Source: Zygophlyctis sp. KS116 (taxonomy: Eukaryota > Fungi > Chytridiomycota). From it: a DNA stretch of 32,000 nt. Below are positions 25,880-28,706 of this stretch, in pieces; positions within the stretch are counted from its first letter, which is position 1, and each line of letters begins with the position of its first letter. The stretch is from contig BAAFSQ010000045.1 in NCBI GenBank assembly GCA_054661495.1, positions 1 through 32,000 of the forward strand, read 5' to 3'. Below the pieces are notes generated by a model that was given only the letters and a program-made list of their open reading frames with translations, was not told where the DNA came from and did not search any database. Made by a program: the position numbers and the translations under genes.

Positions 25880-26128
25880 ATGACTCTAGTAAAGGAATTG
25901 CAAGGAAAAGTATCTAGTATTTTATCAAGATTGGAACAAGTCAAGAAGAATGTAAAATCTGAAGAAATTTCAAAAATTCAAGATGAATTACATGAAATTG
26001 ATGAGAAATTCTCTAATGGAGTGATTTTAGAGTCTGATGGAACTATTGCTCCCGGACAAGGAGAATTGACAAGTGATATTAGTGATGCTCATGAGATTAT
26101 TGCAGATTTATTAGAGTCTATTGATTAA
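25880..26128 (+). CDS. 82-aa protein resembling a single DUF2408 (Cub1/YPL260W) repeat
   Basis: QDELHEIDEKFSNG....DGTIAPGQ..L resembles the recalled L..ID....G.F...G.IP.GQ..L repeat. Confidence 0.55.
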   Translation: MTLVKELQGKVSSILSRLEQVKKNVKSEEISKIQDELHEIDEKFSNGVILESDGTIAPGQGELTSDISDAHEIIADLLESID

Positions 26129-26582
26129 GCATCTCATCAAGTAATAAAGCAAAGTCCTGAGCTTTTTGACTGAAACCTGATTCAGTCTTGAATTCCAGTA
26201 AACGTTCAAAGAGATCAAGAGGATCTTTGGAAATTGATTTTAGAGTCTTTTCAGGCCAATCAATGACTTGTAAGATATTCACCAATTCTAATAGAGCGTT
26301 TGGATCTTGAGGATTTACAGTAATAACTTTGGTGTTTTCTGAATCATCAATACTAGAATCACTAGAATTAATGTAAATTATAGTTAAACTGGGATCAATT
26401 AGAGTTGAAACATGGATATCATCAAGGATTACTGCTTGAATATTGCTGTTAATCTCTAAATTTGAATGTATTCTTGTGTATTCTAAAGGAGCAGTATAAT
26501 ATTTGTTATCAAGAGTTTTTAGAGAATATACTCGAGTTTCAAAGTCTCTATCTTTAAGTGGAAATACTGCGATTTGATTCAT
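26118..26582 (-). CDS. IRC6: Irc6/AAGAB (adaptin-binding p34)-like protein
   Basis: LDNKYYTA motif, LVNILQVIDWP and a C-terminal helical LFERLLEFK segment. The ATG at 26582 is preferred over the upstream track start. Confidence 0.62.
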   Translation of the reverse strand: MNQIAVFPLKDRDFETRVYSLKTLDNKYYTAPLEYTRIHSNLEINSNIQAVILDDIHVSTLIDPSLTIIYINSSDSSIDDSENTKVITVNPQDPNALLELVNILQVIDWPEKTLKSISKDPLDLFERLLEFKTESGFSQKAQDFALLLDEMLNQ

Positions 26583-26598
26583 TCTTAGGACAGTAGGC

Positions 26599-26642
26599 TC
26601 GGTGGGTATCCTGAAACTTGCCCAATAAATATCAAAGATCAA
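26599..26642 (+). repeat. Bipartite direct repeat, left copy: TCGGTGGGTATC-N19-TATCAAAGATCAA
   Basis: Both boxes recur exactly at 27854-27865 and 27886-27898. Confidence 0.9.
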
Positions 26643-26767
26643 CCAATTCACTGAAAAATATGGCATAGTATGTCGGACAGACTCCTTTCGAGTGGTGGGA
26701 CTATTGTCGGGATCATTACAGATCACAATTATCGTGGCGAGTGGCACCGATCGGTTCTTAAAATAAA

Positions 26768-27784
26768 ATGAATATTGCAGCAGAAACAAAACAGCTGCTA
26801 CAGCAATACTATGGGCTCTCTGAAGGACTTCCAGCGCAAAGAATAAAGTCTAAATGGATTCCGGAAAACAACTTTGGCTTCTTGCTCGGCATCATTGCCT
26901 ATGGAAATGATACCCATATCACTCAACTCCACAGCTTGCTGCAAAACAATCAGTTCAAAGATCAGGAACAGTATTTTATTGACTTAATGTTTAACTGGTA
27001 CATTAGGCCTTTTCACAAGAGCTACAATAATTCAGAATCCTGCCATACTTCAAGAAGCGGCTCTGCTGAAAATTTAGAGATAGTGTCAGAAGGAAGTTTG
27101 TTGAGTCATAATCATTTTAAATCAGCTATCTTAGCAAGGGATGGTGTATGTTTGTTTTGTTGGGATATTTTGAGATGTGAAGGCGCTCATATTATTGCTC
27201 AGAAGAACATTGGAATCGAGTATGATGAATCCTCAATTTTCCATCGAGCTGGTCTTACTCAGAAACACCAAGTGCAGAATGGTTTACTCTTGTGTAAAAA
27301 ATGTCACGATTTATTTGACATATTAAAACGATATGTGGATGTCTTGGATGGCAAGTTTATTGTGAAGGTGGTGAATGAGTCAAATGATCCGAAGAGTGAT
27401 TGGTACAAAGTGTGGGAAAAAAACACTAGAAAATTAGAAGCAGATCGAACGTTTTATAAAAAAGATTGGACTCTTATTGATAATCGCCCAGCGGTTGAGC
27501 CTAATGGACAAATGGCCTTGTATTTCATTAAAAATGATCCAAATCAACTACCCCATAGCGATGCATTAAAATTTCATAAGACGGCTTGTCTAATATGGAG
27601 AATGGCAGGTGGTTCTGAACCTGATGAAGAATACTGTTCTGATGATGATGATGATGAACAATGCCCGGTGGATACGGCTGCCTTAAGAAAACGGTTTAAT
27701 CTCCCAGCCCAGGATTCATCCTCAACTCTAAATCCTGACACTGAAATGGTCACATCTCTGAATCAGGTTACTAATTTGATTTAA
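26768..27784 (+). CDS. HNH endonuclease (HNH_2-like; Crinkler/CR-effector-type C-terminal nuclease family)
   Basis: FKSAILARDGVCLFC..EGAHIIA..QNGLLLCKKCHDLFD and ALKFH..CLIWRMAGGSE. No introns. Confidence 0.85.
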   Translation: MNIAAETKQLLQQYYGLSEGLPAQRIKSKWIPENNFGFLLGIIAYGNDTHITQLHSLLQNNQFKDQEQYFIDLMFNWYIRPFHKSYNNSESCHTSRSGSAENLEIVSEGSLLSHNHFKSAILARDGVCLFCWDILRCEGAHIIAQKNIGIEYDESSIFHRAGLTQKHQVQNGLLLCKKCHDLFDILKRYVDVLDGKFIVKVVNESNDPKSDWYKVWEKNTRKLEADRTFYKKDWTLIDNRPAVEPNGQMALYFIKNDPNQLPHSDALKFHKTACLIWRMAGGSEPDEEYCSDDDDDEQCPVDTAALRKRFNLPAQDSSSTLNPDTEMVTSLNQVTNLI

Positions 27785-27853
27785 AATAAATAAATAATTA
27801 ATGTTGTTTTCGCATCAAAGTATCGTTGAAATACTGCATTATGCAGACTCTGA

Positions 27854-27898
27854 TCGGTGGGTATCTTCCATATCGGCTAGGAAATTATCAAAGATCAA
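27854..27898 (+). repeat. Bipartite direct repeat, right copy: TCGGTGGGTATC-N20-TATCAAAGATCAA
   Basis: Matches the boxes at 26599-26610 and 26630-26642. Ends 3 nt before the RAD18 ATG. Confidence 0.9.
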
Positions 27899-27901
27899 AG
27901 A

Positions 27902-28706
27902 ATGGAGTCTCAAATTATTCAGTATTTAAAATGTAGTATATGTAAAGATTTATTTGATACAGCAATGTCACTTTCATGCTCTCATACATTTTGTTCCCAA
28001 TGTATTAGAGTGTACACAAGCTGTAAAAGTAATTGTCCAACTTGTATGAGGGAAATCAAGGGGATTCATGAGCTCAGGAATGATAGATTGTTGGATGCTA
28101 TTGTTGAATTAGTCAAAAGAAAGGATAGCACTGATACTCTTCACGATTCTGGATATGGATCAGTAGAAAATGTAGAAAATGATTTAGAGCAAGATTCTGC
28201 AGAGATACAGCAAGAGCAGCCTGTCGAGTGTCCAATCTGTCATAACTATGTTATATTAAAGGATTTAAATACACATTTGGATTTGGGATGCAAGCAAGTT
28301 TCAAGTTTCTTTAAGAAAAAGTCAAAGGCTAGAGCTTTTAAACCAAGTGTTCCTTATTCTTGTTATAATGATAAGGAATTAAGAAGGTTGTTATCTGGAG
28401 ATGGACTATTGGCGAGTGGAGATCGTCAGACTCTGATTAAAAGACACTCTCAGTTTTTGCATATTCATAATTCAAATTTGGATAGATTGGATCCAAAACC
28501 GCAGGATTGGGTTCTTCAGCAGGTGGAAGACTGGGAAAGAAATGGTACATTTAGAAATTTACATTATAGTAATCGTCAAGTCAGTTCCTGCAAGTAATCA
28601 TTTAGAGAAATATAAAGAAGAATACGATGGATTAATTCAAGAAATTAAATCTAGATCAAGAAAACGTAGAAAAGTCCAAGATGATCAATTGGAAGATATT
28701 TTGTAA
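27902..28706 (+). CDS. RAD18: E3 ubiquitin ligase Rad18
   Basis: RING CSIC..CSHTFCSQCIR..CPTC, UBZ VECPIC..LNTHLD..C and SAP-like ELRRLL..GL..SGDR..LIKRH..NSNLD. Intron at 28545-28569. Confidence 0.92.

Follow-up and report, generated by a model that had tools for sequence, protein, structure and literature searches.

Long direct repeats around an HNH nuclease gene in a divergent promoter of a chytrid fungus point to insertion with target duplication

In the window, by which we mean the whole 32,000-nt stretch of Zygophlyctis sp. KS116 DNA that was analysed, an HNH nuclease gene lies between an IRC6-like gene and RAD18 and is bracketed by two copies of a direct repeat. The reading that we favour on balance is that the HNH segment was copied in at the DNA level, that a long target duplication kept both neighbours intact, and that the flanking repeats recombined later. 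A 1.17-kb DNA segment comprising the HNH_2 gene, a 117-nt leader and a short 3' UTR would have been copied into a head-to-head promoter of ~63 nt, and ~103 nt of the target, namely 43 nt of IRC6-like coding sequence and the whole spacer, would have been duplicated. Each host gene would thereby have retained a complete copy of the promoter, which probably explains how a very compact genome could tolerate the insertion. What makes the locus of interest is that this layout of insert and long duplication is recurrent, and that a recombined junction copy of it exists.

Results

Direct repeats and conserved boxes around the insert

Two short boxes each occur twice at the locus: box 1, TCGGTGGGTATC, at 26599-26610 and 27854-27865, and box 2, TATCAAAGATCAA, at 26630-26642 and 27886-27898. 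In both pairs, order and strand agree and the spacers are 19 nt on the left and 20 nt on the right, exactly as an earlier, sequence-only reading of this DNA had described them. Across the whole assembly (12.73 Mb, 1175 contigs), box 1 has two occurrences, both here, against 0.41 expected from base composition, and the probability of its random recurrence inside 2 kb is ~3e-5. Box 2 has ten occurrences against 1.9 expected; those outside the locus (six of eight inspected) fall mostly within unrelated ORFs or at unrelated spots, none of them near an HNH gene.

The boxes are portions of a longer direct duplication, in which alignment pairs 26540-26642 (103 nt, plus strand) with 27815-27898 (84 nt, plus strand). 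The aligned copies are identical at 63 of 83 positions (~76%), the right one being shortened by two deletions of 9 nt and 10 nt. While the left copy spans the start codon of the IRC6-like gene (26582-26580 on the minus strand), its first 14 codons (43 nt) and the whole intergenic spacer, the right copy consists of a decayed pseudo-5'-CDS of that gene, box 1, a divergent spacer and box 2. Deleting one repeat together with the insert leaves ~63 nt between the two start codons, in agreement with the short head-to-head gap that had been proposed. The left copy is the native sequence and the right copy its duplicate, given that both the IRC6-like N-terminal codons and the spacer motifs of the left copy (AGTAGG...CTTGCC) recur at the empty sites of relatives described below. 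The left spacer is also the ancestral one, being common to a degenerate HNH copy on contig C583 and to a closely related strain (L052), and partly to the empty-site relative L049; the right spacer was probably replaced rather than drifted.

The right and left spacers agree at 9 of 19 positions, against perfectly identical boxes, and this had been read as a sign that the boxes are still under selection. In the non-functional C583 copy, box 1 carries a 7-nt deletion and box 2 six mismatches, with the spacer there ~80% conserved, and the intergenic differences between the window and the 97% identical strain are confined to the spacer and flanks, the boxes being unchanged. Decay in the one copy and lack of change in the strain, while its spacer changed, favour selective constraint on the boxes, which we consider plausible on these comparisons. 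The statistics are modest, and selection, although likely, is not proven, because two such perfect runs arise in ~6% of shuffles of the match/mismatch string (P about 0.06). Within the duplicated host promoter the boxes are the best-preserved pieces, and they do not act as a site that the insert recognises; most likely both host genes need them, as elements of the promoter or 5' UTR. The further suggestions of a nuclease or recombinase site, and of a two-box motif linked to HNH paralogues across the genome, found no support: box 1 is unique to this locus, the other box 2 sites inspected lie near no HNH gene and no other HNH copy carries the boxes.

Host genes and empty sites in relatives

The gene called IRC6-like after the earlier reading (26118-26582, minus strand, 154 aa) was recognised as an ORF that is conserved and syntenic in relatives, where its orthologues show 40-43% identity and a common N-terminus, MNQIA[VL]FPL. 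Its protein had no Pfam match, nor any PDB sequence match with a profile of four orthologues. The first exon of RAD18 (27902-28597, plus strand), whose ATG lies 3 nt downstream of box 2, encodes a RING finger and a weak SAP match by Pfam, and its orthologue is named RAD18 by JGI. Orthologues were searched for with RAD18 exon 1 alone (no spliced model) and with the 154-aa IRC6-like gene, and those of both queries were found on shared contigs.

In three relatives (L049, L051 and an ENA contig), the gene order is GET3 - x - IRC6-like(-) / RAD18(+) - PI4K with the HNH gene absent, and the start codons of the IRC6-like gene and RAD18 are 38, 61 and 69 nt apart. RAD18 is ~62% identical in these three relatives, and the empty site of L049 shares the spacer motifs AGTAGG... 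and CTTGCC of the left copy. The same left junction, followed by the first part of the HNH ORF, stands on a 675-nt metagenome contig (L052) that matches the window at 96.8% identity; the insertion is thus not an assembly artefact and is older than the split from that strain. Metagenome scans with the IRC6-like gene and with the Methyltransf_28 neighbour of another HNH copy gave no matches.

With three relatives lacking the HNH gene and a 97% identical strain carrying the insertion, the gene is a lineage-specific insertion into a former head-to-head promoter of 38-69 nt. The earlier expectation of an empty site at the orthologous interval was therefore borne out three times over; together with the native left copy, the empty sites also uphold the proposal that the insert integrated at a promoter and that the repeats are its target duplication.

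The inserted unit and its nuclease

Comparison with paralogues bounds the inserted unit at ~26652-27812 (1.17 kb), made up of the 117-nt leader, a 338-codon ORF and a UTR of ~28 nt. A left junction of ~9 nt and the leader (~26652-26767) together occupy 26643-26767 on the plus strand. The leader is 96% identical to that of the copy on contig C88 and is conserved in a locus of a sister organism (L047); within this genome, the leader and its 23-nt core are restricted to five HNH copies. The HNH_2 nuclease gene follows at 26768-27784 (plus strand, 338 aa) as a single, intact open frame matching PF13391, so that the plus-strand ORF is indeed an intronless HNH nuclease, as had been supposed. Behind it, at 27785-27814 on the plus strand, comes a short 3' UTR with AATAAA motifs (AATAAA stands ~20 nt before the unit end), where 3' end alignments place the end of the sequence common to other copies.

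An upstream frame of 34 codons also lies in the leader (26690-26794), its TGA overlapping the ATG of the HNH gene (ATGA). As a coding uORF this frame was rejected: its start codon is not conserved and three of its four substitutions relative to C88 are non-synonymous. A known RNA in the leader or flanks was likewise rejected, Rfam giving only a sub-threshold chance match.

The PF13391 match (E 1.8e-8; 34.6 bits against a cut-off of 21) covers residues 137-184 of an HNH core that extends over residues 128-184. Among 33 homologues, N171, H180, C176 and C179 are invariant and H141, C128 and C131 are present in at least 90%, and the protein has the His/Asn/His set of a beta-beta-alpha-metal fold as well as zinc-binding Cys pairs. 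With dN/dS of 0.28-0.45 against paralogues, the gene is under purifying selection. In the predicted model, residues 3-78 form four helices at a pLDDT of ~90, the mean over the whole protein being 64; no PDB match was found for the N-terminal four-helix unit, and a Foldseek search of the HNH model against the PDB returned nothing below E 2. NCBIfam gave no matches for the protein and PADLOC weak matches to the HNH core only, and its Atlas neighbours are chytrid HNH_2 clusters. The idea of a Crinkler-type nuclease found no support in these comparisons, since Pfam gives only HNH_2 at E up to 0.1, with no Crinkler header, and the predicted N-terminus is all-helical, with four helices in the model.

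The insert has none of the usual marks of a transposable element for which it was searched, in line with what had been seen by eye: its ends score below shuffled controls for terminal inverted repeats, there is no A-run of a poly(A) tail at 27800-27815, and the HNH gene is the only ORF, leaving no transposase.

A second insertion on the same contig

About 22 kb downstream on the same contig (C45 49019-51271; L053:2520-4772), a 1.9-kb gene is flanked by direct repeats of 148 and 166 nt that are 92-95% identical and come from the 3' end of a Snf7-family gene. The gene has no Pfam match and its junctions show no poly(A) tail; EF1-gamma and a Snf7/VPS60-like gene converge on its site with their 3' ends. 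Judging from the two loci, the layout of an insert with a long duplication is independent of both cargo and target type.

The junction copy and the sister-organism locus

On contig C583, HNH codons ~227-338 and the 3' UTR are followed by an 85-nt repeat of IRC6-like 5' CDS and spacer, then by the leader and HNH codons 1-13. This arrangement is that of a head-to-tail junction of the IRC6-like/RAD18 HNH locus, in a copy that is degenerate and carries flanking DNA. Its repeat is chimeric, with derived states of the right copy beside the UTR and left-type sequence in the spacer and leader junction. A crossover between the flanking repeats would produce just such a chimera, and we infer that the C583 structure arose from one, through a circle or through unequal exchange.

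The HNH copy on contig C252 is syntenic with L047, where the HNH gene stands between AMP-binding and Methyltransf_28 genes, at 93-97% nucleotide identity. In L047, the HNH UTR gives way directly to a stretch that matches the beginning of the duplicated segment at 14/17 positions. This stretch is followed, as in the native spacer, by CTTGCCCA and then by 117 nt from a coiled-coil gene that is found intact beside the C583 fragments; the upstream flank has a 12/13 match to 26637-26649. If L047 is assumed to be the donor, the junction matches amount to 14/17 at the 3' side and ATCA at the 5' side, and these are equally expected if L047 descends from the present locus. The matches are possibly microhomologies from donation to the IRC6-like/RAD18 promoter, or possibly flank that was carried over by copying in the reverse direction; with carried-over flank, L047 may end in register with one repeat period, as a linearised circle would. 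Sequence distances do not settle the direction, because the copies exchange sequence.

Further observations concern the same two loci. The 117-nt pseudogene fragment in L047 (7081-7197) comes from the last exon of the coiled-coil gene, to be compared with L041 (contig C583) 2505-2622. The C252 copy (L044:4517) has lost 221 nt relative to L047:7005-7225 and has had its C-terminus replaced, and dN/dS of 0.78 between C252 and L047 suggests relaxed constraint. An extended homology between the upstream flank of C252/L047 and the IRC6-like 5' region was dismissed as not significant, the suggestive MAFFT alignment being spurious.

The C583 and L047 copies also bear on the order of events. A circular DNA that had captured a ~100-nt segment of the IRC6-like/RAD18 region could have integrated by a single homologous crossover (Campbell-type), which would leave the cargo between two copies of it. 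Such an origin would suit a duplication whose length and position are arbitrary relative to the genes and whose length varies between cases; C583 shows the exact order of a circle junction, and the L047 copy has ends that fall next to each other within a single repeat period. However, the C583 repeat is a chimera of copies that had already diverged and is thus easier to explain as derived from the integrated locus than as its precursor, no circle was observed, and an extra step would be required to load target DNA onto the circle. We therefore regard integration of a circle as unlikely.

Copies and contexts of the HNH family

This genome contains at least six full-length copies of the family and many fragments. 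A word search returned 215 homologues, of which the named ones are all from Chytridiomycota, several per genome, with hosts that include Batrachochytrium, Globomyces, Gorgonomyces and Boothiomyces. The family is intronless throughout, and its paralogues and homologues occupy at least six unrelated contexts; it is evolutionarily mobile and keeps landing in new places. The nearest paralogue of the window copy is at a dS of ~0.5. No flanking duplications above shuffled controls were found at the paralogues on C88, C252, C136 and C181.

Four of six independent contexts are divergent promoters, in which the HNH gene is co-oriented with the right-hand gene (binomial ~0.04 against 25%). This is a weak hint of a target preference, and selection for expression accounts for the excess equally well. 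A self-mobilising, selfish HNH cassette could in principle recognise the boxes, or promoters generally, cut there and insert itself, and the earlier reading had proposed a promoter-targeting element of this kind. The nuclease is intact and under selection, and its family moves, often into divergent promoters. Against this stand the boxes, found at no other family copy (nor are terminal inverted repeats or a poly(A) tail), the other copies, which have neither common termini nor duplications, and the unrelated, non-HNH cargo that sits in the same layout where two 3' ends converge. HNH homing, moreover, normally proceeds without target duplication. Taken together, these points make such a cassette highly improbable.

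Several further features of the family were noted. Window positions 26684-27033 (the leader and first ~270 nt of the ORF) are 97-99% identical to L043 (contig C88), and identity is 63-90% further 3'; this patchiness is probably due to ectopic gene conversion between paralogues. On C88, the HNH copy is surrounded by secreted pepsin-like aspartic protease genes, at least four of them in tandem (L043:900-7510). The HNH paralogue on contig C136 has a tandem duplication of 122-127 nt, 95-98% identical, at its 5' end (L045:3192-3405). Tandem HNH arrays occur in relatives (L069:5001-8889; L048:324-3718), as three genes with a period of 1.38-1.54 kb between a proteasome subunit gene and Tfb2, and as two copies around a JmjC/cupin gene.

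Discussion

How the segment may have entered

As the layout is independent of cargo and target type, we argue that the copy-in would have proceeded through DNA break repair or replication by the host, rather than through a transposase or a reverse transcriptase. Copies of the family carry pieces of flanking DNA and not fixed ends. In a process of this kind, insertions would survive only where the duplication left both neighbours intact. The flanking repeats could then recombine into a head-to-tail circle or tandem, and the fragment now on C583, with its head-to-tail structure, would have arisen by such a route. The age of the event (repeats ~76% identical, dS ~0.5) prevents a confident reading of the donor and of the junction chemistry.

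One alternative to DNA-level copying is retroposition: a LINE enzyme would have copied an HNH mRNA into DNA at a break with a wide stagger, which would account for both the lack of introns and the long target duplication. The shared unit is of transcript size, comprising leader, ORF and an AATAAA ~20 nt before the end, and only a few nt separate the end points of the window and C88 copies. The lack of introns is uninformative in this respect, since the whole family is intronless. However, a poly(A) tail is absent both here and at the younger neighbouring insertion, and the C583 copy, possibly also the L047 copy, carries flanking DNA that is not transcribed, so that retroposition seems to us no more credible than a self-inserting cassette. 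Least probable of all is that slippage first duplicated the promoter in tandem and the HNH gene later entered the junction between the copies, which in a compact genome would be among the few neutral places for an insertion: this requires two independent events at exactly one point, no relative has the duplicated promoter minus the insert, and the layout recurs elsewhere in the genome.

Copying at the DNA level with a long target duplication thus remains our preferred reading, and it leads to a more tentative idea, which at present we would rate as possible rather than likely. Long target duplications may turn inserted genes into pop-out modules, in that circles with the gene and a hybrid repeat could re-insert elsewhere and so carry nucleases and other cargo to new sites with no transposase. 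The permuted C583 copy with its chimeric repeat, the copy between AMP-binding and Methyltransf_28 that ends in register, and the tandem arrays in relatives are all in line with this idea.

Significance and comparison with known systems

The locus offers a clean, datable example of gene gain in a compact eukaryotic genome with unbroken neighbours: relatives preserve the arrangement from before the event, two strains carry its outcome, and C583 holds a secondary product. Taken with the second case, the locus points to a recurrent movement of whole genes that fits no transposon class and in which circular DNA may be involved. The duplicated promoter is, in addition, a natural experiment that singles out two short sequences as candidate motifs of the core promoter; to our knowledge, promoters are almost unstudied in this fungal group. 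Our search of the literature on long target duplications and on chytrid HNH or Crinkler mobility found nothing directly relevant.

Several familiar classes of mobile DNA were considered. A homing gene is inserted precisely, at one site in all carriers; here, there are at least six contexts and a duplication of ~103 nt. As a cut-and-paste transposon, the insert lacks terminal inverted repeats and a transposase, and its ~103-nt duplication is absent at other copies. As a LINE retrocopy, it lacks poly(A), and the derived C583 copy holds flanking DNA. Crinkler/CR effectors, of which some with HNH toxin domains are listed in PMC5289972, are similar as nuclease genes expanded by lineage in chytrids but differ in their N-terminal header, which is missing here. 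Free-standing HNH homing endonuclease genes of phages and organelles are likewise small, intronless HNH genes that are present or absent between close relatives. The gene described here belongs instead to the PF13391 subfamily, has paralogues at unrelated sites and is flanked by a duplication of ~100 nt in place of a precise insertion.

A closer likeness in layout is found in the Campbell-type integration of phages and integrative elements into tRNA genes, where direct repeats of the target (attL/attR) keep the host gene intact and recombination between them releases a circle. In contrast to those elements, there is no integrase here and no constant att site, each insertion duplicating a different local sequence. 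Insertions by template switching or break repair (FoSTeS/MMBIR, or SDSA in which templates are switched and end joining closes the gap) share with the present locus a segment from elsewhere, a duplication of variable length, the lack of fixed termini, unrelated cargoes and possibly short matches at the junctions, although any junction microhomology is here obscured by age. What sets the chytrid locus apart from them is that its cargo is a whole functional gene, that two packed host genes are preserved, and that the layout is recurrent in a small genome.
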